Virus record (IMG/VR): IMGVR_UViG_3300027759_000046
Location: 124,001-188,000 of that record
Length of the DNA stretch: 64,000 bases
Direction: 5' to 3' (one strand)
Below the pieces are notes generated by a model, which did no database searches, was not told where the DNA came from, and saw nothing but the letters and a program-made list of their open reading frames with translations. Positions 13,026-61,932 of the stretch are shown here, one piece after another (the first letter of the stretch is position 1; each line of letters opens with the position of its first letter). The position numbers were made by a program, and so were the translations under genes.

Positions 13026-13026
13026 T

Positions 13027-13104: not shown

Positions 13105-13117
13105 ATATATTTTTGCG

Positions 13118-13188: not shown

Positions 13189-13200
13189 ATTTAGTATTTC

Positions 13201-13217
13201 CAACATGTCAAAGAACC
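13201..13217 (-). promoter_or_regulatory. boxA-like antitermination site GGTTCTTTGACATGTTG
   Basis: Resembles rRNA-operon boxA (E. coli TGCTCTTTAACA; GTTCTTTGACA form in other phyla); lies inside the tRNA array in sense orientation. Confidence 0.5.
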
Positions 13218-13259
13218 TAACTCTCTAAGTATAGACTAATATACTATAGTTTAGAGCTT

Positions 13260-13333
13260 TGGCACGAGTGGAGAGATTCGAACTCCCATCAACGGTTTTG
13301 GAGACCGGCATGCTACCATTGCACCACACACGT
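13260..13333 (-). tRNA. tRNA-Trp(CCA)
   Basis: CCGGT CTCCAAA ACCGT; CCA end encoded. Confidence 0.9.
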
Positions 13334-13341
13334 GTATTTTT

Positions 13342-13419
13342 TGGTTGCGGGACCCGGACTCGAACCGGGAACTTCAGCTTATGAGACTGACGAGATGACC
13401 ACTTTCTACGCATCCCGCA
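13342..13419 (-). tRNA. tRNA-Met(CAT)
   Basis: TGCGGGA/TCCCGCA fully paired; TCAGT CTCATAA GCTGA; CCA encoded. Confidence 0.9.
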
Positions 13420-13424
13420 ATGTT

Positions 13425-13501
13425 TGGTTGGAATAATAGGACTCGAACCTATAACCTTTCGCGTATCAGGCGAGCGCTCTAACCAATTGAGCTATATTCC
13501 A
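13425..13501 (-). tRNA. tRNA-Ile(GAT)
   Basis: TCGC CTGATAC GCGA; CCA encoded. Confidence 0.9.
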
Positions 13502-13506
13502 GTATG

Positions 13507-13580
13507 TGTCCCCGACAGGACTCGAACCTGTGACTCCCTCATTAAAAGTGAGGTGCTCTAACCAACTGAGCTACGAAGAC
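13507..13580 (-). tRNA. tRNA-Lys(TTT)
   Basis: CCTCA CTTTTAA TGAGG. Confidence 0.95.
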
Positions 13581-13659
13581 ATATTGTTTTGCCTGTAACC
13601 CATATTGGTTAGCAGGTCTTTATCGTTTTCGTTTCATATCTTTATACATTTTTTTTCTG

Positions 13660-13732
13660 TGGTGAGGGGCGGGATCGAACCGCCGACACCAGGATTTTCA
13701 GTCCTGTGCTCTACCTTCTGAGCTACCTCACC
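13660..13732 (-). tRNA. tRNA-Phe(GAA)
   Basis: CAGGA CTGAAAA TCCTG; first tRNA of the array in transcription order. Confidence 0.95.
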
Positions 13733-13948: not shown

Positions 13949-13991
13949 GTTATTTATAAATCTATTATACCAACTTTTTGAAAAAAGGTTT
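13949..13991 (-). promoter_or_regulatory. Tandem promoters for the tRNA operon: class II (AAACC-N17-TATAAT) and T4-late-like TATAAATA
   Basis: TATAAT at 13964-13969; TATAAATAAC at 13949-13958. Confidence 0.65.
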
Positions 13992-49666: not shown

Positions 49667-49698
49667 AAGCCTAATATACTCTATACCCGGTAACCGGG

Positions 49699-49879
49699 AC
49701 TAGGGAGTACCTGGCAACCTGACCAGCCTCCAGACCCTATAGACCCAGACACGGGACTAGGGAGTAACCCCGAACCCTGAGCCAGACCCCAGACTCGCCT
49801 GACCCCGATGGGACTAGGGAGTGCCGGGCAGCCAGCCGCCCTTGGGGTACCTGCTCGGCCTGCTTAAACACTAGGGAGT
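49699..49879 (+). repeat. Array of four ACTAGGGAGT sites at exact 57-bp period
   Basis: Starts at 49699, 49756, 49813, 49870; 47-bp intervening sequences diverged. Confidence 0.95.
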
Positions 49880-50013
49880 ACGGTGACCCCCTCGGCCTCG
49901 CCGGAAACTCTGGACTCCAGGGTCTCGCGGGGCCGGGGATGCCGAGACTATAGGGACTGGACGGGACATGGGGATCCGCGGAGTCTCGGCAGACCGGGTA
50001 TAAATAAGTCTAT

Positions 50014-50682
50014 ATGGAAACACGCGATACACAAGACGGAGCCGAGGATAACAGAGATTACCTTGCGCCCGGCCACGGACCTACTGGCAATCTGGTCTAT
50101 AAGAAAGATGCAGCTCGGTACCTAGGTATAAGCCTTAAGACTCTAGAGCGCTATGTGAAACAGGGTCTGGTCAAGCCCTTTAAGAACGAGGTAAACGGCC
50201 GAACCTACTTTGACCAGCTGGATCTACTAGCCTTACTAGGGAGTAGACTACCCCAAGAACGAGAGGTTGTGCTGTACTGCCGGGCTGCGGGGATTCCGGA
50301 TCAGGGTAAAGCCGGCGTATCCAGCCAGGCCAGACTGCGAGACCAGGTAGACCGCTGTACCGAGTACTGTACCAAGGCTGGGGTCCGGGTCGATCGTATA
50401 ATCCAAGAGATTGGAAAGGGGCACACCCTGAATGGTCGCAGCGGGATTGACCAATTGCTGGATTTAGTGTTCCGAAAGAAGGTATCAATGATCGTGATCG
50501 AGTGCCCGGATCGTCTGGCTCGTTGGGGCATGGGCGAGGTCTTGGAGAGATTCCTGACCTGGCACGGTGTAGAGCTGCATGTTATAAACAAGGGCTGGTC
50601 ACGTGCCGAATTCCGCGAAGAGGTAAAAGAAGATCTTGCGGGAATCCTATTCGAGGCGAAACGCCTGCTAGGAGAAGCTTAA
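50014..50682 (+). CDS. IS607 TnpA-like serine recombinase (HTH + resolvase fold), catalytic Ser apparently lost
   Basis: AARYLGIS.KTL.RY...G HTH; YCRAA in place of YxRVS; EIGKG...GR; DRLARWG; no adjacent tnpB; promoter TATAAATA at 49999-50006. Confidence 0.85.
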   Translation: METRDTQDGAEDNRDYLAPGHGPTGNLVYKKDAARYLGISLKTLERYVKQGLVKPFKNEVNGRTYFDQLDLLALLGSRLPQEREVVLYCRAAGIPDQGKAGVSSQARLRDQVDRCTEYCTKAGVRVDRIIQEIGKGHTLNGRSGIDQLLDLVFRKKVSMIVIECPDRLARWGMGEVLERFLTWHGVELHVINKGWSRAEFREEVKEDLAGILFEAKRLLGEA

Positions 50683-51053
50683 CTAAATATTGTTGGATTA
50701 CGGCGGCCCCATTCTCTGAGCAAGACGCCAGCCTGGGAGTTTGCCTCGTTCTCTATGTCAGATCCGTCGGCACCGTCCAAGACCTTGCCGCTGTCGCGCT
50801 GATGATGGTGTACCAATTCATGGGCCAAGGTTCTGTACCAGTCTGCACGGACTCTGGTTCCGCGAAGAACCCAGATCTCATTGGACTGTGGATTAAAGTA
50901 TCCCATTGACTTATTTAACATAGCCTCCCTATGGTCATCAGAAATGTGGATCGTTGGGGTGCTGGTCCAGCCTAACTGCTGACGACAGAAGTGTACGAAC
51001 TCCTCTAATTCGGAGTCTTCCTGCCATTCACGGGATTCTTTAATGTATTTCAT
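50679..51053 (-). CDS. HExxH metallopeptidase-like protein with CTS-like start
   Basis: MKYIKE; TLAHELVHH...E.EAN..AG; late promoter at 51057-51066. Confidence 0.75.
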   Translation of the reverse strand: MKYIKESREWQEDSELEEFVHFCRQQLGWTSTPTIHISDDHREAMLNKSMGYFNPQSNEIWVLRGTRVRADWYRTLAHELVHHHQRDSGKVLDGADGSDIENEANSQAGVLLREWGRRNPTIFS

Positions 51054-51249
51054 ATAGTTATTTATTCATGGAGTTCTCAGCGAACCCCAGAAATGTGACC
51101 TTTGTACCTGTCTCGGGGTTTCCCCCAGCACGGGGCGAGCTCCAGAGCCCATGCCAGGTCGGCACGGCCCCGGGGCTTTGGGCGCCTTATTCTAATATAC
51201 CATTTTGCCCATCATTCGGCAATTAAATAATAAAAAAATAAGATACGTT

Positions 51250-51384
51250 ATGGCTAAACAGATTATTGCAAGACTCCACCTTGCTAAACCCAAAGTAAAG
51301 AAACCCGGCGTACACGCCAAGTCCGGTTCCTCTCGCAACAAGAGATCCAAGAACTACAAGAAGCCCAACGTTGGACAGGGCTAA
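51250..51384 (+). CDS. Small highly basic protein (44 aa, not in ORF track)
   Basis: MAKQIIARLHLAKPKVKKPGVHAKSGSSRNKRSKNYKKPNVGQG. Confidence 0.65.
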   Translation: MAKQIIARLHLAKPKVKKPGVHAKSGSSRNKRSKNYKKPNVGQG

Positions 51385-51389
51385 ACCCA

Positions 51390-51421
51390 AAAAAGGGACT
51401 CCACTAGGGAGTCCCTCTCTT
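51390..51421. terminator. Bidirectional terminator containing an ACTAGGGAGT copy
   Basis: AAAAAAGGGACTCC-ACTAG-GGAGTCCCT. Confidence 0.75.
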
Positions 51422-51441
51422 CATTAACCAATTAACCTTTC

Positions 51442-52560
51442 CTAGATAGCAGCTAGGTCTGCGTGTTGTAGATCCCAAGTCTTAGCGAATAGATTTCCAC
51501 CGTCGACCTTGAAACGTTTTGAGTTCTCGAAGTTGAAGATCGACTGGTGACTTCCAATCCATGTCAACTCGTTAACTACATCCCATACAGTAGCATCAGT
51601 CTTGATAAACTTCTTCTGTGCGTCTGTTAGGGTCAATGGGTTGTGGCCCTTACGGAAGATACGTTTTGTTGCCGCATCGTATTCTGGAAAGAACTGTTGT
51701 TCTGCTGCCTTGATTAGGTGAGCCTTCATGTCAGGATTTTCTTCCTTGATCTGGCCAGTTACTGAGTACATCGCTCGCTCTAATTCTCCGTAGCTTGCAC
51801 GTGTTGTCATCGCTGTTTCCAATCTGTCTTGGAAAGTTCTTGGTACAAATCCTACCTTTGCCCAACCGTTCATGCTCGTTAAGAGTTCGCGGAAAGCGTC
51901 TTGGCCTTTACCAAACTCGAATGCTGTATTCAAGTTTCTGGCTACTGCACCGTTTGCGCAGCTTAGGCGTAAGAAGAAGTCGTCTACTCTTGAGTTGATA
52001 TTGGAGTTTACTAGGGAGATCCCGAAGCGGAACACCTCGTCCTTACCGATCTTCTCAAAGCCTACTTGACTGCCGTGGATGAGGTTGATACTTAAGCCGT
52101 TCTTGCCGCCATGGTCGATTGACTCTACATGCATGTCGGGGATCTCGTTAAGGATCGTCTCCGCCGTGTTGAATAGGGTCTCATTGCTTAGACGATGGTA
52201 ACGATCTGCCTTTACGATATCGCCAACTTCGCGTTTGTCCGCATCGCCGATAAGTAAGAACTCTTTTGAACCGTCACGCGTTTCTGAATAGGCTTTAACT
52301 GCCTGTAATAGTTTGGTCGCGACAGCTCTGTCCTCGTTCTTGTCCATGCGGCTAAGCAACGTGGATTGGATATTGACTGCCTGTCCCAAGCGGTTGAAGA
52401 ACCTGTTAGAGACTGGGATACGTGCGCCATCGATAAAGATGCATCCGTTCTTGATTGAACTATCGTCGATCTGAATATCAGATAACTTAACTCGCTTTGT
52501 TAGCGGATCCTGTCCTGCGAGATTTGCTTTGCTTTCGCTAAATTGACTTTGATTAATCAT
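51442..52560 (-). CDS. DUF932/DUF945-like protein
   Basis: Y.RLSN, FGISLVNS and LRLSCANG motifs. Confidence 0.6.
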   Translation of the reverse strand: MINQSQFSESKANLAGQDPLTKRVKLSDIQIDDSSIKNGCIFIDGARIPVSNRFFNRLGQAVNIQSTLLSRMDKNEDRAVATKLLQAVKAYSETRDGSKEFLLIGDADKREVGDIVKADRYHRLSNETLFNTAETILNEIPDMHVESIDHGGKNGLSINLIHGSQVGFEKIGKDEVFRFGISLVNSNINSRVDDFFLRLSCANGAVARNLNTAFEFGKGQDAFRELLTSMNGWAKVGFVPRTFQDRLETAMTTRASYGELERAMYSVTGQIKEENPDMKAHLIKAAEQQFFPEYDAATKRIFRKGHNPLTLTDAQKKFIKTDATVWDVVNELTWIGSHQSIFNFENSKRFKVDGGNLFAKTWDLQHADLAAI

Positions 52561-52588
52561 GTGGTATATGGTTTTTTGGTTTATATTA

Positions 52589-53689
52589 TTATACTAAATT
52601 GTCTGTAGCTTCGTCCGTTTGCGGAGCAATAGTTTCCTCTTCAGTTGGGGTCTTAACTGATAAGAAGAGATCGTTGAACTTGTGTTCCAACTCCTGACGA
52701 CGAGCTGACTCCTCATCCGCAAGTTTAGCAACCTCGGTCTCCTGTCTCCATGAGGTCTCGTCCCACTTGACTTCACCGTTTACTAGGGAGTAGTATAGAC
52801 GCTTACCGACTAGGCTTCCTCCACGTCTGTTCTTTGAGAACTCTACGAAACGTCTGCCTGACTCGTCGAACTTGATCTCCATCATGGATGTGGTCGCATG
52901 TTTAAGATAGGTAGATCCTACATACTGTCCGCCTTTCGTCATGTGCTGAATTGCAAAGATTGTTTTGCCGTGTTTGTCAGCAGCTTCGATGATGAGGTTG
53001 GTCAGCCATGTCTGGGCTCTCGTAGATTTCCAGCCTAGGATATCCGCAAGCTTTACAATAATATCCTGATGAGAGTCAATCAAGATTACGTCGTGATCCC
53101 CTTTGATTGTGTCTTCCAACACCTTGTCGAAACGACCCATCACGTAGTCCATAACCAATAAGGTCGGAACGTTCGCAATGATTGGGGTTTTTTGGAAGTA
53201 GAAGTAGAGATCGTTACGAGTCATCTCACTTGAGATGTAGAGGATCTTGGCCTCGGGCTGTACTCGCTTGATCTTAGAGATAAGATCCAATGTCACGGTT
53301 GATTTACCTACGCCCGACTCGCCGATTACAATATTAGCAGTTCCCGAAAAGATACCACCGTCTTCCGTATGGTCCGAGAAAAGCTTGTCAATAATACCGC
53401 CCGTCTTGTAGGCTTTAAACTCTGGGAAATCCATCTCACCGATCTCGATAATCTCGGCCACCATGTCTTGGGGTACCTCGATGGTAGGGGTTACTAGGGA
53501 GTCCGTCGTGATACCGGCTCTGAGCTTCTTTATTACTCCATTGAAGAGACCGTAACTCACATTGGCATCTGCACCTGTGGTCATGAACTCTGTGTAGAGC
53601 TGCTGTACTGTCTTGTCCGTTGGGACCTCGCCGTTATGGCTTTGTTCGAAGAAGGTTCGAACCGTAAGTTCTTTTTTTCCGATCTGCAT
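52589..53689 (-). CDS. RecA/RadA(Sms)-like ATPase
   Basis: GGIFSG...GESGVGKST, YISSEM, ILIDS, H.TK.G...G...LKH, KNRRG; lacks Zn finger and Lon-like domain. Confidence 0.8.
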   Translation of the reverse strand: MQIGKKELTVRTFFEQSHNGEVPTDKTVQQLYTEFMTTGADANVSYGLFNGVIKKLRAGITTDSLVTPTIEVPQDMVAEIIEIGEMDFPEFKAYKTGGIIDKLFSDHTEDGGIFSGTANIVIGESGVGKSTVTLDLISKIKRVQPEAKILYISSEMTRNDLYFYFQKTPIIANVPTLLVMDYVMGRFDKVLEDTIKGDHDVILIDSHQDIIVKLADILGWKSTRAQTWLTNLIIEAADKHGKTIFAIQHMTKGGQYVGSTYLKHATTSMMEIKFDESGRRFVEFSKNRRGGSLVGKRLYYSLVNGEVKWDETSWRQETEVAKLADEESARRQELEHKFNDLFLSVKTPTEEETIAPQTDEATDNLV

Positions 53690-53805
53690 ATTTTATTTGG
53701 GGTTAATTGGTTTATAATATTATACTACAGTTCTGCAGTTTTGGCTTCAGTTCTTCAGTTTTTTATTATTTATTTAGACTGAAGAACCGGCCGGACTAGG
53801 GAGTA

Positions 53806-53979
53806 CTACTCATCAAAGTACAGGAACTCAACCGCTTCCGCGCATTCAAACATTCCAAGGTCTTCGAACATGGTGTAGGCTCCGTCAGCATCGCTCATCG
53901 CGACCACCTCCATTGCCTGGTACACGGCGTCCTCGCCGAACTGGGCTATTGCTGCATCTATTTTTTCTTGTGTTACCAT
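53806..53979 (-). CDS. Small acidic protein (57 aa, not in ORF track)
   Basis: MVTQEKIDAAIAQFGEDAVYQAMEVVAMSDADGAYTMFEDLG...FDE. Confidence 0.7.
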   Translation of the reverse strand: MVTQEKIDAAIAQFGEDAVYQAMEVVAMSDADGAYTMFEDLGMFECAEAVEFLYFDE

Positions 53980-53984
53980 AGTTT

Positions 53985-54122
53985 CTATTTTATAATGATT
54001 GTAAATTCTGAACCGAAAGCCATTTGATATTCGCGCTCCAACTCTCTGGCCTCTTTAAGAGTTTTGGCGGTGTCAACTACCTCGCGACCGTAGCGCGATA
54101 CTGCTATGATTTTATATGTCAT
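53985..54122 (-). CDS. Small protein (45 aa, not in ORF track)
   Basis: MTYKIIAVSRYGREVVDTAKTLKEARELEREYQMAFGSEFTIIIK. Confidence 0.7.
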   Translation of the reverse strand: MTYKIIAVSRYGREVVDTAKTLKEARELEREYQMAFGSEFTIIIK

Positions 54123-54124
54123 GA

Positions 54125-54538
54125 TTAGATTGATTTTAAAAGTTGAGTAAATGTTTGAGCTTCAGCAAGTGGCTTATCAAAACCAGTTGCTCGTGAAAAT
54201 GCTTCGGCCTTGCCGTTGTGGCCAGATTTACCGGTTACCCAGAAGAGTACCTCACCGGATTCGCGATCGCAGATTGAGAAGGAATCGTATAGAGGTCCGC
54301 TCATTGGGCAATTGTTCTTGAAGAACACATAGGTCTTTGTACAATCGATAGCACGACCTGATTCGCGAAGCGCATTGACGAACTTGATTACTTGACCCTG
54401 TAGTTTCTTTGCTCTCATGGGTAGAGATGAGTCCTTACAGAACCAATCATAGAAGTCATGGCAATGTGGATAAAGAGCTGATTGGCCTTGGGCCCATGCG
54501 TACATTTGGTCTGCGATTGATACTTGATTTTCTGTCAT
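54125..54538 (-). CDS. Early hypothetical protein
   Basis: DWFCKD...FKNNCP...LYD.F.ICD. Confidence 0.75.
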   Translation of the reverse strand: MTENQVSIADQMYAWAQGQSALYPHCHDFYDWFCKDSSLPMRAKKLQGQVIKFVNALRESGRAIDCTKTYVFFKNNCPMSGPLYDSFSICDRESGEVLFWVTGKSGHNGKAEAFSRATGFDKPLAEAQTFTQLLKSI

Positions 54539-54575
54539 ACGTTAAAGGTTTAATGGTTTAAGAATTAATTGATAT

Positions 54576-54660
54576 GTAAATATAATACATTAGTTTGACA
54601 CTAAAAAACTTTTTATGACTTATTTTCAAAAAAGTTATTAACATTGGATTGTTAATAACT
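54576..54660 (-). promoter_or_regulatory. Early promoter cassette with phased GTTATTAACA box (inverted pair here)
   Basis: TGTTAATAAC-TTTTTTGAAAATAAGTCATAAAAAGTTTT...TATATTTAC. Confidence 0.8.
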
Positions 54661-54736
54661 CGCAGAGTCTGAGGCAGGTCGGAGTATACCTCCCGCTTCC
54701 TTGTTCCGAACCGTCCCGTCTAGATTGATTGACATA

Positions 54737-54804
54737 GTAAATATAATAAAAAACCCTGAATCTAAAAAATCCAGGGTCATTTATTTTCAGGAAAGTTATT
54801 AACA
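54737..54804 (-). promoter_or_regulatory. Early promoter cassette
   Basis: Box 58 bp from the TATATTTAC element; drives a ~75-nt non-coding stretch. Confidence 0.75.
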
Positions 54805-54808
54805 ATTT

Positions 54809-55033
54809 CTAGTGTTCAGGAATCTCTAATTCTAGGTCTCCGATCTTTACTGTCTTGCCGATGAGGTCTCGACTGCTTGCCGCTTTGGCATGGCCGCGGT
54901 GGTCATGGTAATCAAGGTCTATTTCTTCAGTCGCGTTCGCAAGTAGGTTAAACATCTGTTCCGGTTCTTTTACACAAACCTCCCTGCCGTTTTCATAAAG
55001 GTATAGTCGTACTATCTCGTTCATGGTGGTCAT
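54809..55033 (-). CDS. Early hypothetical protein
   Basis: 74-aa ORF. Confidence 0.7.
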   Translation of the reverse strand: MTTMNEIVRLYLYENGREVCVKEPEQMFNLLANATEEIDLDYHDHRGHAKAASSRDLIGKTVKIGDLELEIPEH

Positions 55034-55065
55034 GGGTTTTTTGTTATTTAATAAAAAGAAAGGGG

Positions 55066-55446
55066 TTATAAACCCCTTTGCAATATTTCCTTTTCTCTTT
55101 GAGTTAGGGACTCAACTCCCGATCTCGAAATTTTATCAAGGATTTCGTCCACCGTTAAATCCGGTGTTGCAGTTTGCGCTGCCGTTTTGAGTACCGCATT
55201 GATCGCTTGCATCAACGCCTCAGGAAGATTTAGGTTCACCTTAGTTTCTTCCATTAAGAAGAATGTGGCTCCTGTTTCCTTCACATCCTGGGTGATCTCT
55301 TCCTCTGATGATTGAGTATTAAAGACCGACAGGATTGCGCCCGGAATTGGTGCGGCGAATGCGGGTCCTACAATGTGGGGTTTCAACGCTTGTGAAACCG
55401 CTGGGTTCGGAGCTGAGCCGAATCGAACTAAGAATAATTTTTTCAT
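55066..55446 (-). CDS. Protein with C-terminal DUF6576-like domain
   Basis: VDEILDKISRSGVESLTQREKEIL. Confidence 0.7.
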   Translation of the reverse strand: MKKLFLVRFGSAPNPAVSQALKPHIVGPAFAAPIPGAILSVFNTQSSEEEITQDVKETGATFFLMEETKVNLNLPEALMQAINAVLKTAAQTATPDLTVDEILDKISRSGVESLTQREKEILQRGL

Positions 55447-55469
55447 ATTTGGTTAGATTGATTTATAAA

Positions 55470-55537
55470 GCTAATATACAACAAAACTTTTAAATAAAAA
55501 AACTTTTGATGAATTATTTTCAGAAAAGTTATTAACA
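55470..55537 (-). promoter_or_regulatory. Early promoter cassette
   Basis: TGTATATTAGC element with box at 58 bp. Confidence 0.8.
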
Positions 55538-55589
55538 AAAAAGGGAGCCACATGGACTCCCGATCTTGTCAATAAACCAATTTTACCAA

Positions 55590-55886
55590 TTATACCAAAT
55601 GTAGTATCTCAGCTAGAGCGCGATCAGTTACTCGTCGGCTCATACCTCCAATATGCCATTCAATAGTTTCTTCTTTCGAGATGCGACGGTATTCTTTCCA
55701 GTCGTAGATGGTAAATACATCTCCTTCTTCCGTTTCGCAAATCCATTCGAAATTTACTTTATCTTCTCCAGTATTATCTTCAATCGTGGGTTCTCCAAGG
55801 ATTGCGATAAGGTCATTCACTGAACACTTTAATACTGTATCGTGGAACGAGGTTCCGCCTGCACGCTTTTCGGTTTTTCTAGCCAT
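55590..55886 (-). CDS. Early hypothetical protein
   Basis: DKVNFEW...FTIYDWK...WHIGG; promoter TGTATATTAGC at 55913-55923. Confidence 0.75.
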   Translation of the reverse strand: MARKTEKRAGGTSFHDTVLKCSVNDLIAILGEPTIEDNTGEDKVNFEWICETEEGDVFTIYDWKEYRRISKEETIEWHIGGMSRRVTDRALAEILHLV

Positions 55887-55950
55887 GGTTATTTTTTTAG
55901 TTGGTTGATAAAGCTAATATACAACAAAAACCTGATACTGGAAAATCTTT

Positions 55951-56274
55951 TTAAATATTTTTTACAGGTATTTTCTCGATCAAGGCTAGGCTGCCAAGCG
56001 GAGACCACATAGCCTCTTCATAGCTTTCAAACCGGGACCGGTCCCATAGCCAGACCAGACCGTGCTTCTTCCATTCCTCTCGCGCTGCACGCTCTGTCCT
56101 GCTTGCTTCGGCGATCTGCATCTGAAACAAGGCAATTGCATACACGGCTTTAAATGTTCCGCAGACACAGACAGGTTTTTCTTCTTCCCCTACACGAGAG
56201 GTTAGCAACCAGACTTCTTTATTTTTCCGGGTTGGACTAGGCATGTTAATCTCTTTTTTCTGGTACGAATACAC
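55951..56274 (-). CDS. Hypothetical protein
   Basis: 107-aa ORF. Confidence 0.6.
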   Translation of the reverse strand: MYSYQKKEINMPSPTRKNKEVWLLTSRVGEEEKPVCVCGTFKAVYAIALFQMQIAEASRTERAAREEWKKHGLVWLWDRSRFESYEEAMWSPLGSLALIEKIPVKNI

Positions 56275-56353
56275 AGTAGATACAGAATGCTACACTTACT
56301 AGGATTGCTATTGCGCACATGGTTGAATGGATTAAGGGGTTAATAATATTATC

Positions 56354-56602
56354 TTACCCAAGTTCTTCACTTAACTTCTTGAGGTCAGCACATTTCTCGT
56401 ACTGCTCTTTCTTTTCAAAATGCAAGATCATGGTCCAGATAGCCTGTTTCTTTTCTTCCATTGGGGTTCCATCGTGCACGACATCTCTGAATTCGCCGGC
56501 CAGTGCTTCATAGAGTCTGTCCATGAATCCATCGTAATCTGATTCGCGCAGCCGGATAAGTTCCAGCAGGATATCGTTGTATGTTCTGGTTTTCTTTGCC
56601 AT
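56354..56602 (-). CDS. Hypothetical protein with UVR-like C-terminus
   Basis: FEKKEQYEKCADLKKL. Confidence 0.65.
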   Translation of the reverse strand: MAKKTRTYNDILLELIRLRESDYDGFMDRLYEALAGEFRDVVHDGTPMEEKKQAIWTMILHFEKKEQYEKCADLKKLSEELG

Positions 56603-56721
56603 ATCTTTATTATTTATTCTTGTTTATTTAGAGTCACTCAGCGTGAATCTTAGCTTGTCTATAATATAGTACTAAAAAAGGGTCTTCGGAACACCGAGAC
56701 CCTTAATAATAATTTGGATTA

Positions 56722-57048
56722 CTAGATAAATTGGGTTAGGTAGCCGGTCGGCCAGCCCTCATCGTCCTGTTCAAAGTCCATGTCTGTCTGAATCAGGTCC
56801 GAGTAAATGCTTAGCTTCTCGCGTGGTTCCAGCCCGGCAAAGCAGTTAGAGATTAGGGTATCTACTGATTCGTCTGGTACAAACTCATCGTCCAACCTGA
56901 CTGAACCATCTTCTAACATGAAGATGTCTACTGCTAAGTTCTCTCGCATTATGTCTATTGCATCTGCTGCATTTAACTCTGCAAGGTAAGCGTCTACTTG
57001 TTCGAACGCTTCTTCAATTGGAACTCTTAATAGGTCTGGATTTCTCAT
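56722..57048 (-). CDS. Acidic hypothetical protein
   Basis: 108-aa ORF. Confidence 0.7.
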   Translation of the reverse strand: MRNPDLLRVPIEEAFEQVDAYLAELNAADAIDIMRENLAVDIFMLEDGSVRLDDEFVPDESVDTLISNCFAGLEPREKLSIYSDLIQTDMDFEQDDEGWPTGYLTQFI

Positions 57049-57061
57049 TGTTAAATCTTGG

Positions 57062-57187
57062 TTAGGGTTGATAAAAGAATAGAATACACGTTGCTACTAC
57101 TGCGAGAGCAATGATAATCAATGCTCCATTAATTAGAGAATCTCTTCTCATCATTTTAACTTCTTTTTCTGAAAATTTCTTTGCCAT
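57062..57187 (-). CDS. Small membrane protein (41 aa, not in ORF track)
   Basis: MAKKFSEKEVKMMRRDSLINGALIIIALAVVATCILFFYQP. Confidence 0.6.
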   Translation of the reverse strand: MAKKFSEKEVKMMRRDSLINGALIIIALAVVATCILFFYQP

Positions 57188-57223
57188 CTTTTTTATATTT
57201 TAATTGATTAATAATTTAGGTAA

Positions 57224-57679
57224 TTAGGCGGCGTTCTTTACGAACGCCTTGTCTGCCCATGTCTTAGCTCCAGCCATCCTATAATTATTCTGACTGTATA
57301 GATTAGTATTAGACCAGTCTTGATTGATGTCGCCCACTTCCATTGCCAGGAACATGTCCGAATCCATTAACTTGATCTTGTTACCTGACCTTGCGAATAC
57401 AGTGATGAAGGTTTCTGATCCTTCTGCTCTGAACTCGATTGTCTGCAACGCGCCTTTTTTAAATCCTCTGAATACATCCATTGCAGAGTTCCAAGACTGT
57501 CTTCCCCAATTTGCTCTAATGCCATGGTCTTCAACGACTGTCATGAAGCCTGCCTGTACTCGAACGATTGCGCGGTATTCGCCTTTACGGCCTTGGATAA
57601 AATCCACTTGGCTGATTCTCTCCGCATTGAAGATTTCAACTGATGGTTTGTAGTCTGGATTAAATTGTTTCTTTTTCAT
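57224..57679 (-). CDS. Early hypothetical protein
   Basis: 151-aa ORF; partial promoter cassette at 57704-57755. Confidence 0.75.
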   Translation of the reverse strand: MKKKQFNPDYKPSVEIFNAERISQVDFIQGRKGEYRAIVRVQAGFMTVVEDHGIRANWGRQSWNSAMDVFRGFKKGALQTIEFRAEGSETFITVFARSGNKIKLMDSDMFLAMEVGDINQDWSNTNLYSQNNYRMAGAKTWADKAFVKNAA

Positions 57680-57754
57680 GGTTGATTGATTTGGTTTATA
57701 ATAGTAAATATAATACTTATTCTTGACAGTAAAAAACTTTTTATGAATTATTTT

Positions 57755-58063
57755 TTAAAATCTTTCTGAACCTAAATGAGAGCAGGCAGAAGAGTATCTC
57801 TCGAGAAGGTTGCTGCCGGCTAGCAGAAGAAAGCTTGAACCTGCAATTCCACGGATCTTATAATCTTCAGGTACTATAACACTGCCAAGTCTGCTGCCGC
57901 CTGAATCCAGTGTCATAATGAATCTACCTTCTCGAACCACTATGAATTCGGAAGAGAAGCCTTCCATCGTAGAGCCCGACGCAATTTGAGTCCAGCCAAT
58001 TTCTTGACCAGACTCGTTTAAGATTTGGAGGCTTGAACCTCGTTGTATAACATTACCTATCAT
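57755..58063 (-). CDS. Hypothetical beta-rich protein
   Basis: 102-aa ORF with a two-fold internal repeat-like pattern. Confidence 0.65.
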   Translation of the reverse strand: MIGNVIQRGSSLQILNESGQEIGWTQIASGSTMEGFSSEFIVVREGRFIMTLDSGGSRLGSVIVPEDYKIRGIAGSSFLLLAGSNLLERYSSACSHLGSERF

Positions 58064-58278
58064 GCTGTTGTCTTTGAATTTTTAATACACTCTTGAAATT
58101 CTTCTTCCGTCAGGTCAGGTATATCCTGAGTTACAAGCTTTAGCAGGGTTGCTGCTTCTATCTCTGTTACTAGGGAGTCCTTATTGACTTTGCCCTTAAA
58201 AGGATCTCCTTCAGAGAATAGAATCTCGACTGCGGTCTCTGCCCAGAAGCGGGCTTCTAATTGAGTTGTCATTATCAT
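58060..58278 (-). CDS. Hypothetical protein
   Basis: 72-aa ORF. Confidence 0.65.
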   Translation of the reverse strand: MIMTTQLEARFWAETAVEILFSEGDPFKGKVNKDSLVTEIEAATLLKLVTQDIPDLTEEEFQECIKNSKTTA

Positions 58279-58994
58279 ACGCCTACCTCCTTTCTCATTT
58301 TAGCACGAGCAACCTTAAGGGCACGGTTAACTTCGACTGGGGTTTTACCTACTGCATCCGCAACTTCCTTGGTAGAGAGACCGTCTCCAACGAGACCGTA
58401 GAACAACTCGACGATTTGACGTTCAGTTGGTTTAAGAACGTTAAGTACTCTACGGAGTATTCGGGTTTGGTCCTCACTATCGAATGGGTCTTGGAAATCT
58501 TCTCTTAACAAGAGATCGCCTACTGTATCGTCGCCATCCTCGCCGATTGGACGATCCAATTGGATGTTACGCATGTTAATGCTTTCGCCTGCCATCTTAC
58601 GTTTGTAAAGATCGTATTCCTGATTTACTGGAATTCGGACAGTACGACCGACTTCGCAAAGAGCAAGGTTTAATCTCTTACGAATCCAGAACTGAGCGTA
58701 AGTAATAAACTTTACGTCTTTATCTGGGGTAAAACGACGAGCAGCTTCGATAAGACCCGCATTACCTTCTTGGATTAAGTCATCGATGGAAAGACCCATA
58801 CCGATAAACTTGTTTGCAAGAGTAACAACGAACTTAAGATTCGCTTGTACTAATTGATGCATTGCTCGCTCATCTCCTTTCTGGATGCGGACTGCTAATT
58901 GAAGTTCTTCAGCCTTGCTGAGCGGAACTGCTACGGGCGCGATATCTTTGAAATATTGCGGTAGACTTTCTGATGTTTCGAATCTTTTCGACAT
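58275..58994 (-). CDS. RNA polymerase sigma-70 family factor (regions 1.2-4)
   Basis: PLSKAEE..LA..I..GD..A...LV.ANL.FV, DLIQEGN.GL..AA..F, KFITYA.FWIR, C-terminal HTH. Confidence 0.95.
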   Translation of the reverse strand: MSKRFETSESLPQYFKDIAPVAVPLSKAEELQLAVRIQKGDERAMHQLVQANLKFVVTLANKFIGMGLSIDDLIQEGNAGLIEAARRFTPDKDVKFITYAQFWIRKRLNLALCEVGRTVRIPVNQEYDLYKRKMAGESINMRNIQLDRPIGEDGDDTVGDLLLREDFQDPFDSEDQTRILRRVLNVLKPTERQIVELFYGLVGDGLSTKEVADAVGKTPVEVNRALKVARAKMRKEVGV

Positions 58995-59024
58995 AGTTGG
59001 TTTGGTTTAATTGATTATTATAAT

Positions 59025-59092
59025 GTAAATATAAACAAAATTTCTGACAAGTAAAAACTTTTTATGACTTATTTTCAAAAAAGTTATTAACA
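59025..59092 (-). promoter_or_regulatory. Early promoter cassette driving the sigma factor
   Basis: TATATTTAC element with GTTATTAACA box at 58 bp. Confidence 0.8.
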
Positions 59093-59096
59093 ATTG

Positions 59097-59207
59097 TTAG
59101 TTAACAACTTGACCGCAATCGCAGCATTTTACAAGTTTGATTCCTGAAACGTGGCGAACTGCTACGTAAGTTCTGATGTGTTGGCATTTGGCTGATTGGT
59201 TATTCAT
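59097..59207 (-). CDS. 36-aa Cys/His peptide (not in ORF track)
   Basis: MNNQSAKCQHIRTYVAVRHVSGIKLVKCCDCGQVVN; own partial promoter cassette at 59211-59265. Confidence 0.6.
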   Translation of the reverse strand: MNNQSAKCQHIRTYVAVRHVSGIKLVKCCDCGQVVN

Positions 59208-59329
59208 AATGTAAATATAACTATAATACTTGACAGTAAAAAACTTTTTGTGAATTATTTTCAAATTATTTTATACGCGAAAAGGGGTCCAACCACGGAC
59301 CCCAATTCTATCAATCAACCAATAGTATT

Positions 59330-59611
59330 TTAATTTAAGCAGATTCCTGTTTCTCGTAACAGGTTCTCTAATTGTATATCTTCTTCAGACATGCCTGATT
59401 CTCTCTTAACCTGTTTAATACAGAACTGCATAAGCAATCGTTGAAGCTCTTGCGTACTGCGCTCGTCCTGTGTTGCGGCCAATAGGGTTATTAATCCATT
59501 ACCGATTAAGATAAGTTCTGAATCAGATGTCTTGATTCCGCCCGCGATTAGGCTATTCGCCAAGGTCTCTAGCTCGGCTCTTGTTTTTTCTCTAATTTCT
59601 TTCTTATTCAT
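59330..59611 (-). CDS. Hypothetical protein
   Basis: 93-aa ORF. Confidence 0.7.
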   Translation of the reverse strand: MNKKEIREKTRAELETLANSLIAGGIKTSDSELILIGNGLITLLAATQDERSTQELQRLLMQFCIKQVKRESGMSEEDIQLENLLRETGICLN

Positions 59612-59639
59612 GGTAGTTGATTATTGATTTAATCTTATA

Positions 59640-59834
59640 TTACTCTTTTCCAAGCGCGATGGCCTTGTTCACTTCATAGATTCTTGACCAGAATTCGTTG
59701 TATTCAAGTTGATTGTCTGGCTTTACAGTTGACTGTACTCTCGCACCGCCGCCATAGGTTAAGTCAATGGGTTCTCCGATCGTTGGATCAATTCCCTGTA
59801 ATTTATAGATTAAGGCCTTAAGTATTTTCTTCAT
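59640..59834 (-). CDS. Hypothetical protein
   Basis: 64-aa ORF. Confidence 0.65.
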   Translation of the reverse strand: MKKILKALIYKLQGIDPTIGEPIDLTYGGGARVQSTVKPDNQLEYNEFWSRIYEVNKAIALGKE

Positions 59835-59949
59835 AGTTATTAGGTTTTACAGATTAAGTTTGTTTTTTAAGGGTCACGCGATTCCCCCAGTACTACTGCG
59901 TGGTCCAGGACCCATGCCTGGGAGGCACGGAAATCCAGGACTAGGTCTA

Positions 59950-60144
59950 TTAACAGATTCGATTGGCCACAAAGCCTTGTGCATCGCTTGCGCCATAGTA
60001 TTTCTTGATCGCGGCCGGTGCGGTAGGATTATCCATCAGCCAGCCATCCGCAATATCGAACGCCATTGAATCGTCTATGTCTCCGGCATCGATTGCGCCC
60101 AGTGCAAGCTCTCGTAATTCAGTATCTAATTTTTCTTTTGTCAT
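59950..60144 (-). CDS. Hypothetical protein
   Basis: 64-aa ORF. Confidence 0.65.
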   Translation of the reverse strand: MTKEKLDTELRELALGAIDAGDIDDSMAFDIADGWLMDNPTAPAAIKKYYGASDAQGFVANRIC

Positions 60145-60203
60145 AGGTATTAGTTTTAGGGTTTAGGGTTAGATTTATAATCAACTGTTACTAGGGAGTC
60201 CGG

Positions 60204-60671
60204 CTAGGCCAGACCCTTGTCTCGTAAAAACAGGCAGCGCTGAATCCTGGTATACAGGTCCGGCAAGGAGTCTGTCATCGCTAAGATCTTCTTTAGGTCA
60301 GGCTTGGGTAGGGTTGACGCAACCATCGCAACCGCAACATCGATTGGATTACCGAGCTTCAGCTGCTCCATGATCTGGCTCGAGCCGGTTGGGCTGATTG
60401 AGCCGGGAATCTTGCACTGTGCTCCGAACTCAAATTGATAGAAGGATTGACGTTCCGTCTGATCAACTAAACTTGCATCAAGCATCTGTCTCACGCGCTG
60501 GATATGCTTGCTTGTCGTGCGGCTGTACTTGCCCTTTGTCATGAGAACTGGTCTACGGCTCAGCTCCTTTGGATAGAACTGTAGGGTCGCGACATGGGTT
60601 TCGTAGCTTATTACCTTGTTCCCAACGAGGAATAGGTTCTGTGCAATCTGTAGAGATGGTTGGAATTTCAT
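60204..60671 (-). CDS. Early hypothetical protein
   Basis: VISY.THVA...KYSRTTSKH motif; shortened promoter cassette at 60675-60721. Confidence 0.7.
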   Translation of the reverse strand: MKFQPSLQIAQNLFLVGNKVISYETHVATLQFYPKELSRRPVLMTKGKYSRTTSKHIQRVRQMLDASLVDQTERQSFYQFEFGAQCKIPGSISPTGSSQIMEQLKLGNPIDVAVAMVASTLPKPDLKKILAMTDSLPDLYTRIQRCLFLRDKGLA

Positions 60672-60755
60672 AGGTTAAATATAAGCATTTTAATTGAGAT
60701 AAAACAATAAAGTTATTAACATAGCTACTAGGGAGTCCGACATAGCCGGTGAGTC

Positions 60756-61274
60756 CTATGACTCTACCGGCGAGAATACTTCGGCAAGGTTGAAGTTGCC
60801 AGCCTGACTGCTGTGAAGCATACGCTCTAAGCATACGGGACCGAGCGCTGTGTGAATCGATTCCGGATGGGTAAGCGGTAATCCGCAAGCGCAGCATCTG
60901 CCTTCGTGGAATAGACCTACACGACCGCGTAAGATCTCTGGATTCTTGATCGCTGATACGACCCAGCCTAGGGCGCGAGCTAAGCGGGAATCCGGTCTAA
61001 CGTTGCGGCCGAGCTTTACGTGCATGGTATCAGAGAATAGAGTTCCTGCGAACTGCGAGCTTTGACGGCCGTCGTTAAGCAAGGAGATGTCAATGTAATA
61101 GATCGGCAACTTGATCTTGCGATCCTGCTTATCGCGCAGCTGCTTGATCTTAACTGTCATGTGGGTTCCTTCCGCAAGGTTACGGAACGTAAGCACTGCA
61201 CGGCCTGCTAACGCGAGCTTTGGAAGAGCAAGCGGGTTGAGGTTTGGACGGGGGATGTTTCTGTGGTTTCTCAT
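60756..61274 (-). CDS. Protein with C-terminal DUF6011-like Zn-binding motif
   Basis: HEGRCCACG.PLT.PESI...LGPVC. Confidence 0.75.
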   Translation of the reverse strand: MRNHRNIPRPNLNPLALPKLALAGRAVLTFRNLAEGTHMTVKIKQLRDKQDRKIKLPIYYIDISLLNDGRQSSQFAGTLFSDTMHVKLGRNVRPDSRLARALGWVVSAIKNPEILRGRVGLFHEGRCCACGLPLTHPESIHTALGPVCLERMLHSSQAGNFNLAEVFSPVES

Positions 61275-61297
61275 GGTTGATTGGTTTAATTGATTAA

Positions 61298-61376
61298 GTA
61301 AATATAACCAATTACTTTCAAATAAAAAAACTTTTTATGATTTATTTTTCAGAAGTTATTAACAAAGTTATTAACA
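61298..61376 (-). promoter_or_regulatory. Early promoter cassette with tandem direct GTTATTAACA boxes
   Basis: Boxes at 61355-61364 and 61367-61376. Confidence 0.8.
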
Positions 61377-61437
61377 CTGGCGGACTGACGTGCAGGTCGG
61401 AGTCTACCCTCTGCGATCCGGTTAAAGATCGAACCTT

Positions 61438-61461
61438 AAAAAACCGGGCGAACCCGGTTCT
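61438..61461 (-). terminator. Intrinsic terminator
   Basis: AACCGGG-TTCG-CCCGGTT followed by TTTT. Confidence 0.85.
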
Positions 61462-61478
61462 CTGTGGTGGGTTGAGGT

Positions 61479-61622
61479 TTAGAACTCGAACGCGGTCGTT
61501 GAGGAGATATTACCGATTACGACATTTACGATTACGACAACGATTCCGATAATCGCGATTCCCGCTAGACACACGGTCCAAGTTTGCATTGCACGTAGTG
61601 CGATCATTTCTGTTTTGCTCAT
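61479..61622 (-). CDS. Small membrane protein (47 aa, not in ORF track)
   Basis: MSKTEMIALRAMQTWTVCLAGIAIIGIVVVIVNVVIGNISSTTAFEF; promoter cassette at 61652-61718. Confidence 0.65.
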   Translation of the reverse strand: MSKTEMIALRAMQTWTVCLAGIAIIGIVVVIVNVVIGNISSTTAFEF

Positions 61623-61695
61623 GGTTGATTTGGTTAATTGGTTAAACATAAGTAAATATAATAATTATCTTTGATATAAAAAAATTTCTGATGAA

Positions 61696-61932
61696 TTATT
61701 TTTCAGAAGTTATTAACAATTCCGGGTTAACGCTTTCGGATTCCGCATAGATCTTTAGACATTGCGGACAGCCTACCGTCTCGAGACCGGATATCCTGGC
61801 CCAGTTGTTGCTAAGCGCTGGCGTTCCGCACAGGTTTCCTGTTCCGCTTTTGTAGATGTGGGCCGTGTTGTTCCATACGTTGCCCTTGTTTCCGAAGATG
61901 GAGAAGTTTGGTTTGAGGTCTTTTGTTTGCAT
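61696..61932 (-). CDS. Small Cys/His protein
   Basis: AHI...LCG...GC..C; promoter TATATTTAC at 61955-61963. Confidence 0.7.
   Translation of the reverse strand: MQTKDLKPNFSIFGNKGNVWNNTAHIYKSGTGNLCGTPALSNNWARISGLETVGCPQCLKIYAESESVNPELLITSEK

Follow-up and report, generated by a model that had tools for sequence, protein, structure and literature searches.

An IS607-type transposase homologue lacking the canonical catalytic serine is retained by a group of large freshwater phages

Identity and genomic context of the gene

A gene for an IS607-type serine transposase homologue without the catalytic serine raises the question of whether it is a decaying insertion sequence or a protein kept by the phage for another purpose. 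We examined this question in a 64,000-nt window (positions 124,001 to 188,000 of the IMG/VR record IMGVR_UViG_3300027759_000046), in which an earlier note had described a domesticated, catalytically dead IS607-type recombinase under a late promoter, repurposed as a non-cutting DNA-bridging or architectural protein for a neighbouring motif array and more distal sites. The observation itself was confirmed, as each statement made on the sequence checked out, namely the helix-turn-helix (HTH) and resolvase architecture, YCRAA in place of YxRVS, the retained DRLAR, the intact frame, the lack of tnpB, the preceding TATAAATA box, and the single in-gene copy of ACTAGGGAGT (Table 1). The interpretation was only partly supported, as detailed below.

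Pfam identified HTH_17/MerR (residues 31–75) and Resolvase (residues 105–214) domains in the 222-aa product, while the NCBIfam IS607 transposase model (NF033518) scored 102.4 bits, below its curated cut-off of 110. Consistent with this architecture, a Foldseek search with an AF2 model returned IS607-type TnpA catalytic domains as best hits (3lhk, 6dgc, 3ilx, 3lhf, and 6dgb; target-normalised TM-score of 0.69–0.77). No near-identical DNA was found among 50,697 GenBank phages, in which protein matches were limited to canonical IS607 transposases at 35% identity or less, so no cultured relative exists.

The gene is not a decayed insertion sequence. About 90 homologues, on phage contigs of up to 293 kb, sit in one syntenic position, and in more than 15 loci from many samples an identical order was seen, comprising the gene on the + strand, followed by a small gene, a DUF932-like gene, and an AAA_25 ATPase gene (a weak match below the Pfam cut-off) on the − strand, and further on a sigma-factor gene. 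The window carries a single copy, and no tnpB-like gene was present in its flanks or in any of six orthologous loci examined with 10-kb flanks. The protein occurs at 100% identity on a 253-kb contig, with relatives at different offsets on contigs of 270–271 kb. Against the closest relative (locus L005, a 97%-identical orthologue; related loci are numbered with the prefix L throughout), we counted 35.5 synonymous and 7.5 non-synonymous differences (dN/dS of 0.058), indicating strong purifying selection.

Table 1. Features of the locus, in window coordinates.
Position	Strand	Feature	Observations
49696–49882	+	Array of four GGGACTAGGGAGT(A/G)C copies at an exact 57-bp period	Motif starts 49699, 49756, 49813, 49870; non-coding and G+C-rich; array at a 57/58-bp period conserved in L005, L001, L007, L020, L021, and L030; spacers 1-2 diverge between the window and L005 while motif and phase are kept
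49933–49998	+	Imperfect inverted repeat directly before the A/T box	17-nt arms, 82% complementary; lies in a leader more conserved than synonymous sites (about 9% divergence from the third repeat to the ATG, against pS 0.22 in the gene)
49999–50006	+	TATAAATA box, 7 nt before the ATG	Candidate -10 element (short-leader or leaderless mRNA) or A/U-rich initiation region; GATAAATA in L001, L006, L007, L031, and L009; TATAGATA in L005
50014–50682	+	CDS, 222 aa	Serine-less IS607-type TnpA homologue
50092–50238	+	Winged helix-turn-helix (residues 27–75)	MerR/HTH_17/Xis/BldC/RacA-like, from Pfam, AF2 secondary structure, and Foldseek hits to RacA-DNA, BldC-DNA, and Xis
50235–50244	+	In-gene ACTAGGGAGT	Encodes the conserved LGS of the interdomain linker; S77 is AGT in 7 of 7 loci and G76 is GGG in 6 of 7, whereas other invariant Ser columns use 5 codons
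50275–50289	+	Y88-C-R-A-A92 (TAC TGC CGG GCT GCG)	End of strand beta1; Ala in place of the catalytic Ser
50290–50325	+	Family-specific loop GIPDQGKAGVSS (residues 93–104)	Between beta1 (84–91) and helix A (104–122) in the AF2 model; S103/S104 at the helix N-terminus, not conserved
50509–50523	+	D166-R-L-A-R170	D166, R167, and R170 invariant; corresponds to the D67/R68/R71 region of resolvases
51394–51416	−	Hairpin GGGACTCC-ACTAG-GGAGTCCC, embedding motif copy 51403–51412	Followed by a T-run on the − strand; intrinsic terminator of the rightward-encoded − strand genes; exact-match metatranscriptome contigs from three runs end at 51425–51427, and nothing is detected over 50476–51263
52010–52019	+	Variant copy ACTAGGGAGA inside the DUF932-like gene	Encodes ISLVN on the − strand; orthologous position kept in L005, L001, L006, and L003
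52782–52791	+	Copy inside the AAA_25 ATPase gene	YYSLVN on the − strand; identical 18 nt, TACTACTCCCTAGTAAAC, in 5 loci although the proteins are only 61–70% identical apart from the near-identical window/L005 pair (96%); none of the 14 codon columns identical across all 7 loci is a Ser, Leu, or Val column
53493–53502	+	Copy inside the 5′ part of the ATPase gene	
53795–53804	+	Intergenic copy	About 85 nt upstream of the likely start of the ATPase transcript
58169–58178	+	Distal copy	Just after the sigma-factor gene
60190–60199	+	Distal intergenic copy	
60727–60736	+	Distal intergenic copy, the last in the window	Next to an AGTTATTAACA element

Loss of the catalytic serine across the family

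In an alignment of 31 orthologues (44–97% identity), Y88, R90, R107, Q111, D166, R167, and R170 were invariant, while the position two residues after R90 (R+2), where active enzymes carry the nucleophile, was Ala almost everywhere. A census of about 90 family members gave YCRAA in 47, YCRSA in 14, YSRAA in 6, and YCRAS in only 4. In our tree, the sequences split at an SH-aLRT of 100 into an 85-row canonical clade with 81 Ser and a 56-row, largely virus-annotated clade in which 44 lack the Ser, with the family and its sister group together lacking it in 25 of 26. The earlier note had named retention of the serine in mobile orthologues, and a catalytic role of the later GVSS serine, as observations that would count against it; orthologues were found neither to retain the Ser, with few exceptions, nor to move, and S103/S104 of GVSS were both absent in 10 of 31 orthologues. 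That this particular protein is catalytically dead nonetheless remains an inference, given S103/S104 lie at the N-terminus of helix A, where the nucleophile sits in active enzymes, and phmmer aligned GVSS with RVSS of a solved transposase (3lhf), such that residual chemistry in this orthologue is not excluded.

The repeated motif and the upstream box

The motif ACTAGGGAGT is far more frequent in the window than expected by chance, with 15 matches at up to one mismatch against 2.84 expected, a number reached in 0 of 100 shuffles. The 12 exact copies are all on the + strand and lie within 49699–60736. Across 16 loci, 124 copies were on the strand of the gene and 2 on the opposite strand, and all 28 neighbour spacings of 150 bp or less were 56–58 bp. 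The copies begin at the array just upstream of the gene, with 2 copies in the 86 kb upstream of -650 against 124 in the 142 kb from -650 onward; given that these loci are related, such counts are not independent events. Copies inside coding regions hold their codons fixed, indicating selection at the DNA level.

The motif or its one-base variant accompanies even relatives of only 27–33% identity, beside whose genes we noted clusters of ACTACGGAGT. Locus L031 has 8 copies, all on the + strand, the short contig L034 has 2 copies upstream, and the short contig L035 has 7 copies, all on the + strand, flanking the gene on both sides. Locus L033, which lies outside the conserved synteny and has different neighbouring genes, carries three inverted pairs (ACTCCGTAGT-N10-ACTACGGAGT), two followed 4 nt later by ATATAAT and the third by ATAT. 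In deeper-branching relatives (L003, L008, L026–L029, and L035), pairs lie on both sides of the gene. A profile search for outgroup loci gave an alignment that was too divergent, and P0099, P0122, and P0103 gave nothing usable in IMG/VR.

We also considered other identities for the motif and array. No -10 or -35 partner lies at a fixed distance from the window copies on either strand, arguing against a sigma-70-type promoter, and the operator geometry seen in L033 thus does not transfer directly to the window. Two gene callers extended orthologues through the array, giving GLGS every 19 aa; however, in the window the array is in another frame, a stop intervenes, and no ORF spans it. A divergent promoter bounding the motif domain on the right was likewise rejected, as − strand genes and their promoter-like repeats continue to 64 kb. 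An Rfam search of 47–62 kb found nothing relevant, and folding of the array and leader gave unconvincing z-scores of -2.2 and -1.8.

The late promoter proposed in the earlier note is not established. The T4-type late promoter carries an invariant TATAAATA at -10, used with a gp55-type late sigma. The box is present here, and one other copy precedes an endolysin gene, but it occurs only 4 times in the 64 kb, which equals chance, and reads (T/G)ATA(A/G)ATA in relatives. All four copies are intergenic and point towards a downstream gene or tRNA cluster. Exact-match metatranscriptome contigs cover part of the gene at low depth, although these are unstranded and give presence and ends but no direction, and one run (X21) holds a 90–95% relative at even depth and may be DNA carry-over.

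Proposed function

We consider it more likely than not that the gene encodes a domesticated descendant of an IS607-type serine transposase that no longer cuts DNA, being a fixed, single-copy core gene of a lineage of roughly 250–270-kb freshwater phages. In this view, the MerR/Xis/BldC-like winged helix would read the asymmetric 10-bp motif, while the resolvase fold, having lost its nucleophile but kept the Arg/Asp residues that normally grip DNA, would serve as the dimerisation or oligomerisation module. The protein would nucleate on the phased array, in the divergent control region between its own gene and the leftward operon, and occupy about eight further same-orientation sites across the roughly 11 kb of mostly small genes to the right, where it would regulate or organise a directional process, most probably transcription. 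Precedent exists in IS607-family TnpA dimers, which bind short subterminal direct repeats cooperatively and pair DNA ends without chemistry (PMC6188088).

Our analysis demonstrates the fold (from domain searches and a predicted model), the loss of the serine across the family, immobility, purifying selection, DNA-level selection on the motif copies, and the co-occurrence of gene and motif across deep divergence. That this protein is what binds the motif, that it does not cleave, and what binding would achieve are inferred from sequence alone, and co-occurrence would also follow if both were read by a third factor. The bridging suggested in the earlier note is likewise without binding or looping evidence, and the strict same-strand orientation of sites over about 11 kb points to a directional process rather than passive looping. 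Furthermore, a Ser-bearing relative (P0094, at L035) carries the same kind of site set, so the sites do not by themselves indicate a non-catalytic role.

A more far-reaching possibility, speculative and unlikely on present evidence although not excluded, is that a whole clade of phage proteins descended from IS607 transposases has swapped DNA cutting for site-directed genome organisation. The dead enzyme would assemble transposase-style paired or filamentous complexes on the phased array and, through the co-oriented sites, mark off and control one roughly 11-kb expression or replication domain at the boundary between the regulatory (sigma-factor) and lysis/structural regions of a jumbo phage, a polar, transposase-derived domain-control system with no described counterpart in phages.

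Alternative explanations

The best surviving alternative, though an unlikely one, is that the motif belongs to another phage factor or acts in RNA (e.g., as a sigma-factor recognition element, a processing or termination signal in − strand transcripts, or a packaging or recombination signal), with the protein having an unrelated job. One copy forms the loop and arm of a working terminator hairpin, the copies share one orientation as signals in a one-directional transcription unit would, and adjacency is weak evidence within a family where synteny is conserved for everything. However, the motif also sits beside the homologue in L033, with its different neighbours, and on the short contigs L034 and L035, copies lie inside the + strand gene as well as in − strand genes, only one copy forms a hairpin, and a different recurrent motif (AGTTATTAACA) marks the intergenic promoter regions.

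It is similarly doubtful that the protein is an origin or iteron-binding protein or a polar barrier to forks or RNA polymerase, with the phased array and the variable tandem repeats beside it forming a replication origin or a one-way block, co-oriented sites acting like Ter sites, and the ATPase (RecA/DnaB-like) and DUF932 protein belonging to the same replication module. The repeats are iteron-like and next to an A+T-rich stretch, other tandem repeats lie upstream in L003, L008, L031, and L035, the neighbour is an AAA_25 ATPase, the polarity of sites fits a directional barrier, and many metagenome contigs break within 0.3–1.3 kb upstream of the gene. Yet no change of gene orientation or skew was seen at the locus beyond the local effect of the + strand gene, the ATPase match is weak, and contig breaks can be explained by repeats.

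Continued activity as a recombinase or transposase, using S103 (or, in a few orthologues, Ser at R+2 or R+1) to delete, resolve, or circularise DNA at the co-oriented sites, appears improbable. While the alignment of GVSS with RVSS, the modelled position of S103, the invariant R90, D166, R167, and R170, and the direct-repeat sites would suit such a role, S103/S104 are not conserved and are preceded by Gly rather than Arg, a 12-residue loop separates R90 from S103, further active-site positions are degenerate (GSG to GKG, and the R45-equivalent), the protein scores below the NCBIfam cut-off, and no deletion variants were seen among contigs from many samples. Least likely is RNA pairing between five ACUAGGGAGU seeds in a + strand transcript and the complementary ACUCCCUAGU in − strand mRNAs, which would explain the single-strand bias, as the array and gene form the only + strand transcription unit in the region, all other copies lie in − strand transcribed DNA, and 10–11 nt is a typical antisense seed length, but which finds no coverage of the array in the exact-match metatranscriptomes, only the weak folding z-scores above, and protein operator-like inverted pairs next to -10 boxes in L033, and leaves the conserved protein without a role.

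Comparison with known systems

The closest known systems are the IS607-family TnpA transposases (IS607, IS1535, and ISC1926/ISC1904; PDB 6DGB, 6DGC, 3ILX, 3LHF, and 3LHK), which share the domain order of a MerR-like winged helix, resolvase catalytic fold, and C-terminal helix. The short directly repeated motifs next to the gene resemble the subterminal TnpA-binding repeats of these elements, and TnpA dimers coat and pair DNA in a chemically inactive state (PMC6188088). The phage protein differs in lacking the Ser at R+2, in the 12-residue loop after beta1, in its fixed, single-copy, tnpB-free context, and in its sites, which are spaced 57–58 bp rather than about 10 bp and extend about 11 kb beyond the gene.

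Domestication of transposases into regulators is well documented in eukaryotes and for TnpB in bacteria. For serine transposases, the only inactive, conserved viral homologue we found in the searchable literature was poxvirus F16 (as cited in PMC11980589), a protein of eukaryotic viruses, of unknown function, that, like the present protein, has lost active-site residues yet is conserved as a fixed viral gene; no cognate DNA motif set is known to have been reported for it. Literature searches for serine-less recombinases or COG2452 in phages found no description of the present family. The present case differs in that the putatively dead enzyme comes with its presumptive DNA sites, whose number, phase, polarity, and domain limits are conserved across phages saturated at synonymous sites, making the function directly testable. 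Serine loss is also common rather than an oddity, given its frequency in the 56-representative clade, whose serine-less members are currently annotated as 'integrase-resolvase' or 'transposase', which would mislead lifestyle and mobility predictions for large phages.

The N-terminal domain superposes on the small MerR-like winged-helix proteins BldC, Xis, and RacA, although the matches cover only about 50 residues at an E of about 0.01 and those proteins lack a resolvase domain. BldC and Xis bind direct repeats head-to-tail, and RacA binds some 25 clustered sites to organise a chromosome region, offering close analogies to asymmetric, clustered sites. MerR-family regulators combine the HTH with a C-terminal coiled-coil or effector domain and a palindromic operator in a 19–20-bp promoter spacer; here, the HTH matches, but the C-terminal part is a resolvase fold and the sites are asymmetric single copies or 57-bp direct pairs. 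Finally, Tn3/gamma-delta resolvase binds a multi-site array (res) just upstream of its own gene in a divergent control region and represses transcription from there independently of catalysis, but has the opposite domain order, an intact active site, palindromic sites, and no distal site set.

Sequence features and predicted architecture

The gene is an intact ORF encoding a 222-aa protein (see the table below), and the observation in the earlier note held, with every sequence detail that it described proving to be correct. Domain and fold searches agreed on an IS607-type architecture. Pfam identified an HTH_17/MerR helix-turn-helix (residues 31-75) followed by a Resolvase domain (residues 105-214), while the IS607 transposase model of NCBIfam scored 102.4 bits, just under its cut-off of 110. 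An AlphaFold2 model built on 31 orthologues (mean pLDDT of 78) returned, as its best PDB matches, the catalytic domains of IS607-type transposases (3lhk, 6dgc, 3ilx, 3lhf, and 6dgb; target-normalised TM-score of 0.69-0.77), and its N-terminal domain matched RacA-DNA, BldC-DNA, and Xis structures.

Features of the locus and of related loci (window coordinates unless a locus is named)
Feature	Position	Strand	Remarks
ORF of the recombinase-like protein	50014-50682	+	222 aa, frame intact
TATAAATA box	49999-50006		Before the ATG
In-gene ACTAGGGAGT	50235-50244	+	Encodes LGS
Y88-C-R-A-A92	50275-50289	+	TAC TGC CGG GCT GCG
R90 codon	50281-50283	+	CGG in all seven loci compared
DRLAR	Residues 166-170	+	
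TGCCGGGC(A/T)GC	49822-49832 / 50278-50288		Third array unit / surrounding the R90 codon
Last array unit	49871-49900		Own conserved context
All exact ACTAGGGAGT copies	Within 49699-60736	+	12 copies
Start of the leftward operon	49473		
Stop-to-stop overlap	50679-50682		4 nt, tail to tail
Next gene	50679-51053	-	124 aa
Hairpin with T-run	51394-51416	-	Perfect, 8 bp; embeds one ACTAGGGAGT copy
DUF932-like protein and AAA_25/RecA-DnaB-like ATPase	51442-52560 and 52589-53689		Each with an embedded motif copy
AGTTATTAACA copies	54633, 54794, 55527, 59082, 60711, 61354, 61366, 61708		Within 54633-61718; one inverted at 54650
Cluster of 17 tRNA genes	11333-13732	-	Two further tRNA genes, at 1798 and 16192
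TATAAATA	13951-13958	-	Just upstream of the tRNA cluster
Tandem repeats upstream of the gene	L003:9672-9837; L008:60-300; L031:5800-5870; L035:520-570		Differ between lineages

Genomic context

Almost every gene in the 64-kb window lies on the - strand, and this gene is one of the few on the + strand. The window also carries 19 tRNA genes, topoisomerase II subunits, two RNA ligases, lysozyme-domain proteins, and a sigma-70-type factor. The same protein is encoded at 100% identity on a 253,137-bp IMG/VR contig, and relatives lie at different offsets on contigs of 270-271 kb. The sequencing runs that hold the locus are freshwater, river, and estuary metagenomes, and no related DNA was found among 50,697 GenBank phages, so this is an uncultured freshwater jumbo phage.

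The gene is not mobile. In every locus with flanks, it sits on the + strand amid - strand genes, followed to its right by a small gene, a 372-aa DUF932-like protein, a 366-388-aa AAA_25 ATPase and, further on, a sigma-factor gene, and there is never a tnpB. The small - strand gene, whose stop overlaps that of the recombinase-like gene, weakly resembles metallopeptidases (DUF6782, below cut-off; phrog_87). Against the 97%-identical orthologue (locus L005), we counted 35.5 synonymous and 7.5 non-synonymous differences, giving a dN/dS of 0.058, whereas more distant pairs are saturated at synonymous sites. Many independent metagenome contigs (those of loci L004, L008, L023, L025, L028, L029, and L030) end inside the gene or 0.3-1.3 kb upstream of it, which could reflect assembly breaks at repeats, strain heterogeneity in the array region, or a physical genome end.

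Loss of the catalytic serine

A word-indexed search found 85 homologues at 44-97% identity, and an exhaustive profile search showed the family as about eight 50%-identity clusters scoring 215 bits or more, after which scores drop sharply to 125 bits and below. Among the distant hits of the profile search, five proteins of 289-1015 aa (P0095, P0104, P0148, P0157, and P0181) match the N-terminal helix-turn-helix of the family 4-12 times in tandem, an unusual multi-HTH architecture.

In 31 aligned orthologues, Y88, R90, R107, Q111, R125, D127, E163, D166, R167, and R170 are invariant, while the residue two places after the Arg, the catalytic Ser in active enzymes, is Ala almost everywhere. Across the roughly 90 family members, the motif reads YCRAA in 47, YCRSA in 14, and YSRAA in 6, with only four reading YCRAS. 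Other active-site positions have also drifted, with GSG having become GKG or GPG and the R45-equivalent being variable. The constant R90 codon and its surrounding sequence, which recurs in the third array unit, may point to a second DNA-level constraint within the gene.

The model places beta1 at residues 84-91, a family-specific loop at 92-103, and helix A from residue 104. S103 therefore sits where a nucleophile would, and phmmer aligns the later 'GVSS' with RVSS of 3lhf, which is the one real reservation about calling this particular protein dead. However, this stretch is variable (GVSA, GVAS, GINV, GVAA, GTGA, GDGA, NNDV, and others) and lacks Ser at both positions in 10 of the 31 orthologues, which argues that S103 is a helix cap rather than a nucleophile.

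A tree of 141 representatives splits with an SH-aLRT of 100 into a canonical clade of 85 rows, 81 of which have the Ser, and a clade of 56 rows, 44 of which lack it and carry A, N, K, G, D, P, or E instead. This family and a sister group form a starred clade in which 25 of 26 lack the Ser. The nearest Atlas clusters are annotated as viral 'COG2452 integrase-resolvase'. Loss of the nucleophile is thus old and common in this largely virus-annotated branch.

A co-oriented motif at the locus

None of the 12 exact copies of ACTAGGGAGT lies in the 49.6 kb to the left, and four of them form an array with an exact 57-bp period just upstream of the gene. Across 16 loci, the 8-mer core occurs 124 times on the strand of the gene and twice on the other, and all 28 neighbour spacings of 150 bp or less are 56-58 bp. 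Only 2 copies were found in the 86 kb lying more than 650 bp upstream of the ATG, against 124 in the 142 kb from there on.

Copies inside coding regions sit at orthologous positions. For the in-gene copy, S77 is AGT in 7 of 7 loci and G76 is GGG in 6 of 7, while other invariant serines use five different codons. In the ATPase gene, 18 identical nucleotides encode YYSLVN in five loci, although those proteins are only 61-70% identical apart from the near-identical window/L005 pair (96%), and a second SLVN with the same codons occurs in the DUF932-like gene. Between the window and its 97% relative, the first two array spacers have diverged and carry an indel, while motif and phase are kept. The motif is therefore under selection as DNA, or as its transcript.

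The last array unit, in the window and its orthologues, differs from the other units in that GCCC(A/T)A(A/T)GGGTAC(A/C)nnCTGTGC lies about 25 nt before the last motif copy and TACGG follows it, and this may be a site for another factor. In addition to the shared motif, different lineages carry different tandem repeats upstream of the gene, including a 16-17-bp unit CCCAGTCTAAACTTGGCC, a unit of about 34 bp in L008, CCAACCTCAATACGAGA-like units, and TGTGTCCTAGACTG three times.

Association of the motif with the protein

Given that everything within the family is syntenic, adjacency of gene and motif proves little, and the informative cases are the loci of distant relatives. L031, from a relative of P0096 (a protein about 30% identical to the window protein that reads YCRVAG), has eight ACTACGGAGT copies, all on the strand of the gene, from -369 into the downstream genes, and no ACTAGGGAGT. 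L034 (protein P0106) has two copies, at -123 and -27. L035 (protein P0094, which still has the Ser) has seven copies, all on the + strand, arranged as a pair upstream, a pair inside the gene, and a triplet just downstream, 50-53 bp apart, a layout that looks like the two ends of an insertion sequence. L033 (protein P0122, of the sister clade) has different neighbouring genes and eight copies, all within 850 bp after the gene. Three of these are inverted pairs, ACTCCGTAGT-N10-ACTACGGAGT, two followed 4 nt later by ATATAAT and the third by ATAT, which is operator-on-promoter geometry.

A 10-mer recurring next to four independent, 27-33% identical homologues cannot be chance, and L033 removes synteny as the explanation. 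IS607-family TnpA binds short subterminal direct repeats cooperatively as dimers and pairs DNA in a chemically inactive assembly (PMC6188088). The most economical reading is that the motif is the ancestral TnpA binding site, that the protein still reads it, and that extra copies have spread into the neighbouring roughly 11 kb.

The interpretation in the earlier note, a domesticated and catalytically dead transposase acting as a DNA-bridging or architectural protein under a late promoter, was supported only in part. That the protein is domesticated and almost certainly non-catalytic is well supported, and the link to the motif is strongly supported by co-occurrence, whereas bridging stays a hypothesis. 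The architecture, the loss of the serine across the family, the fixed genomic position, and the co-occurrence of gene and motif come directly from our sequence comparisons and structural model; absence of cleavage, binding of the motif by this protein, and any consequence of such binding are inferred.

The protein descends from, and by inference works like, IS607 TnpA, yet it lacks three defining features of that family: the catalytic Ser, a score above the curated cut-off, and mobility. The closest described analogue is poxvirus F16, a predicted inactive serine recombinase of unknown function (cited in PMC11980589). We found no description of a phage family of this kind, or of its site set, in the searchable literature.

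Putative role and expression of the locus

The array lies in a 540-bp divergent intergenic region between this gene and the leftward operon. A conserved A+T-rich box about 120 bp left of the array reads TATAAGTAGAC on the - strand and looks like the -10 element of that operon, although this is our inference. In exact-match metatranscriptomes, the DUF932 and ATPase genes, which always follow the recombinase-like gene, are well covered (depth of 11-18), and contigs from three runs end at 51425-51427, beside the hairpin terminator that embeds one motif copy, with nothing detected over the next gene. The recombinase-like gene is weakly covered (depth of about 2.7 over 50165-50395), and the leftward operon is not detected. 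This fits a boundary between expression classes; however, the contigs are unstranded and shallow.

The strict polarity of sites over kilobases argues for an interaction with a directional process, such as transcription, replication, or packaging, whereas simple looping would not need it. We therefore retain, as rivals, a model in which the locus is an origin or barrier and, behind it, one that acts through RNA pairing.

Promoter-like elements

TATAAATA occurs four times in the 64 kb, as chance predicts. All four copies are intergenic and correctly oriented, with one preceding an endolysin gene. An A/T box of this kind is conserved 5-18 nt before the ATG across the family and its outgroups, but it reads GATAAATA in most and TATAGATA in the closest orthologue. 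It is a conserved expression signal, possibly producing a leaderless or very short-leader mRNA, and calling it a T4-type late promoter is unsupported.

A second recurrent, one-strand motif, AGTTATTAACA (TGTTAATAACT on the - strand), lies in intergenic regions upstream of - strand genes and is often followed by A/T-rich -35/-10-like boxes. It is also frequent in the related loci L001, L005, L006, and L007 but absent from L003 and L008, and is probably the promoter or operator element of the small-gene region.
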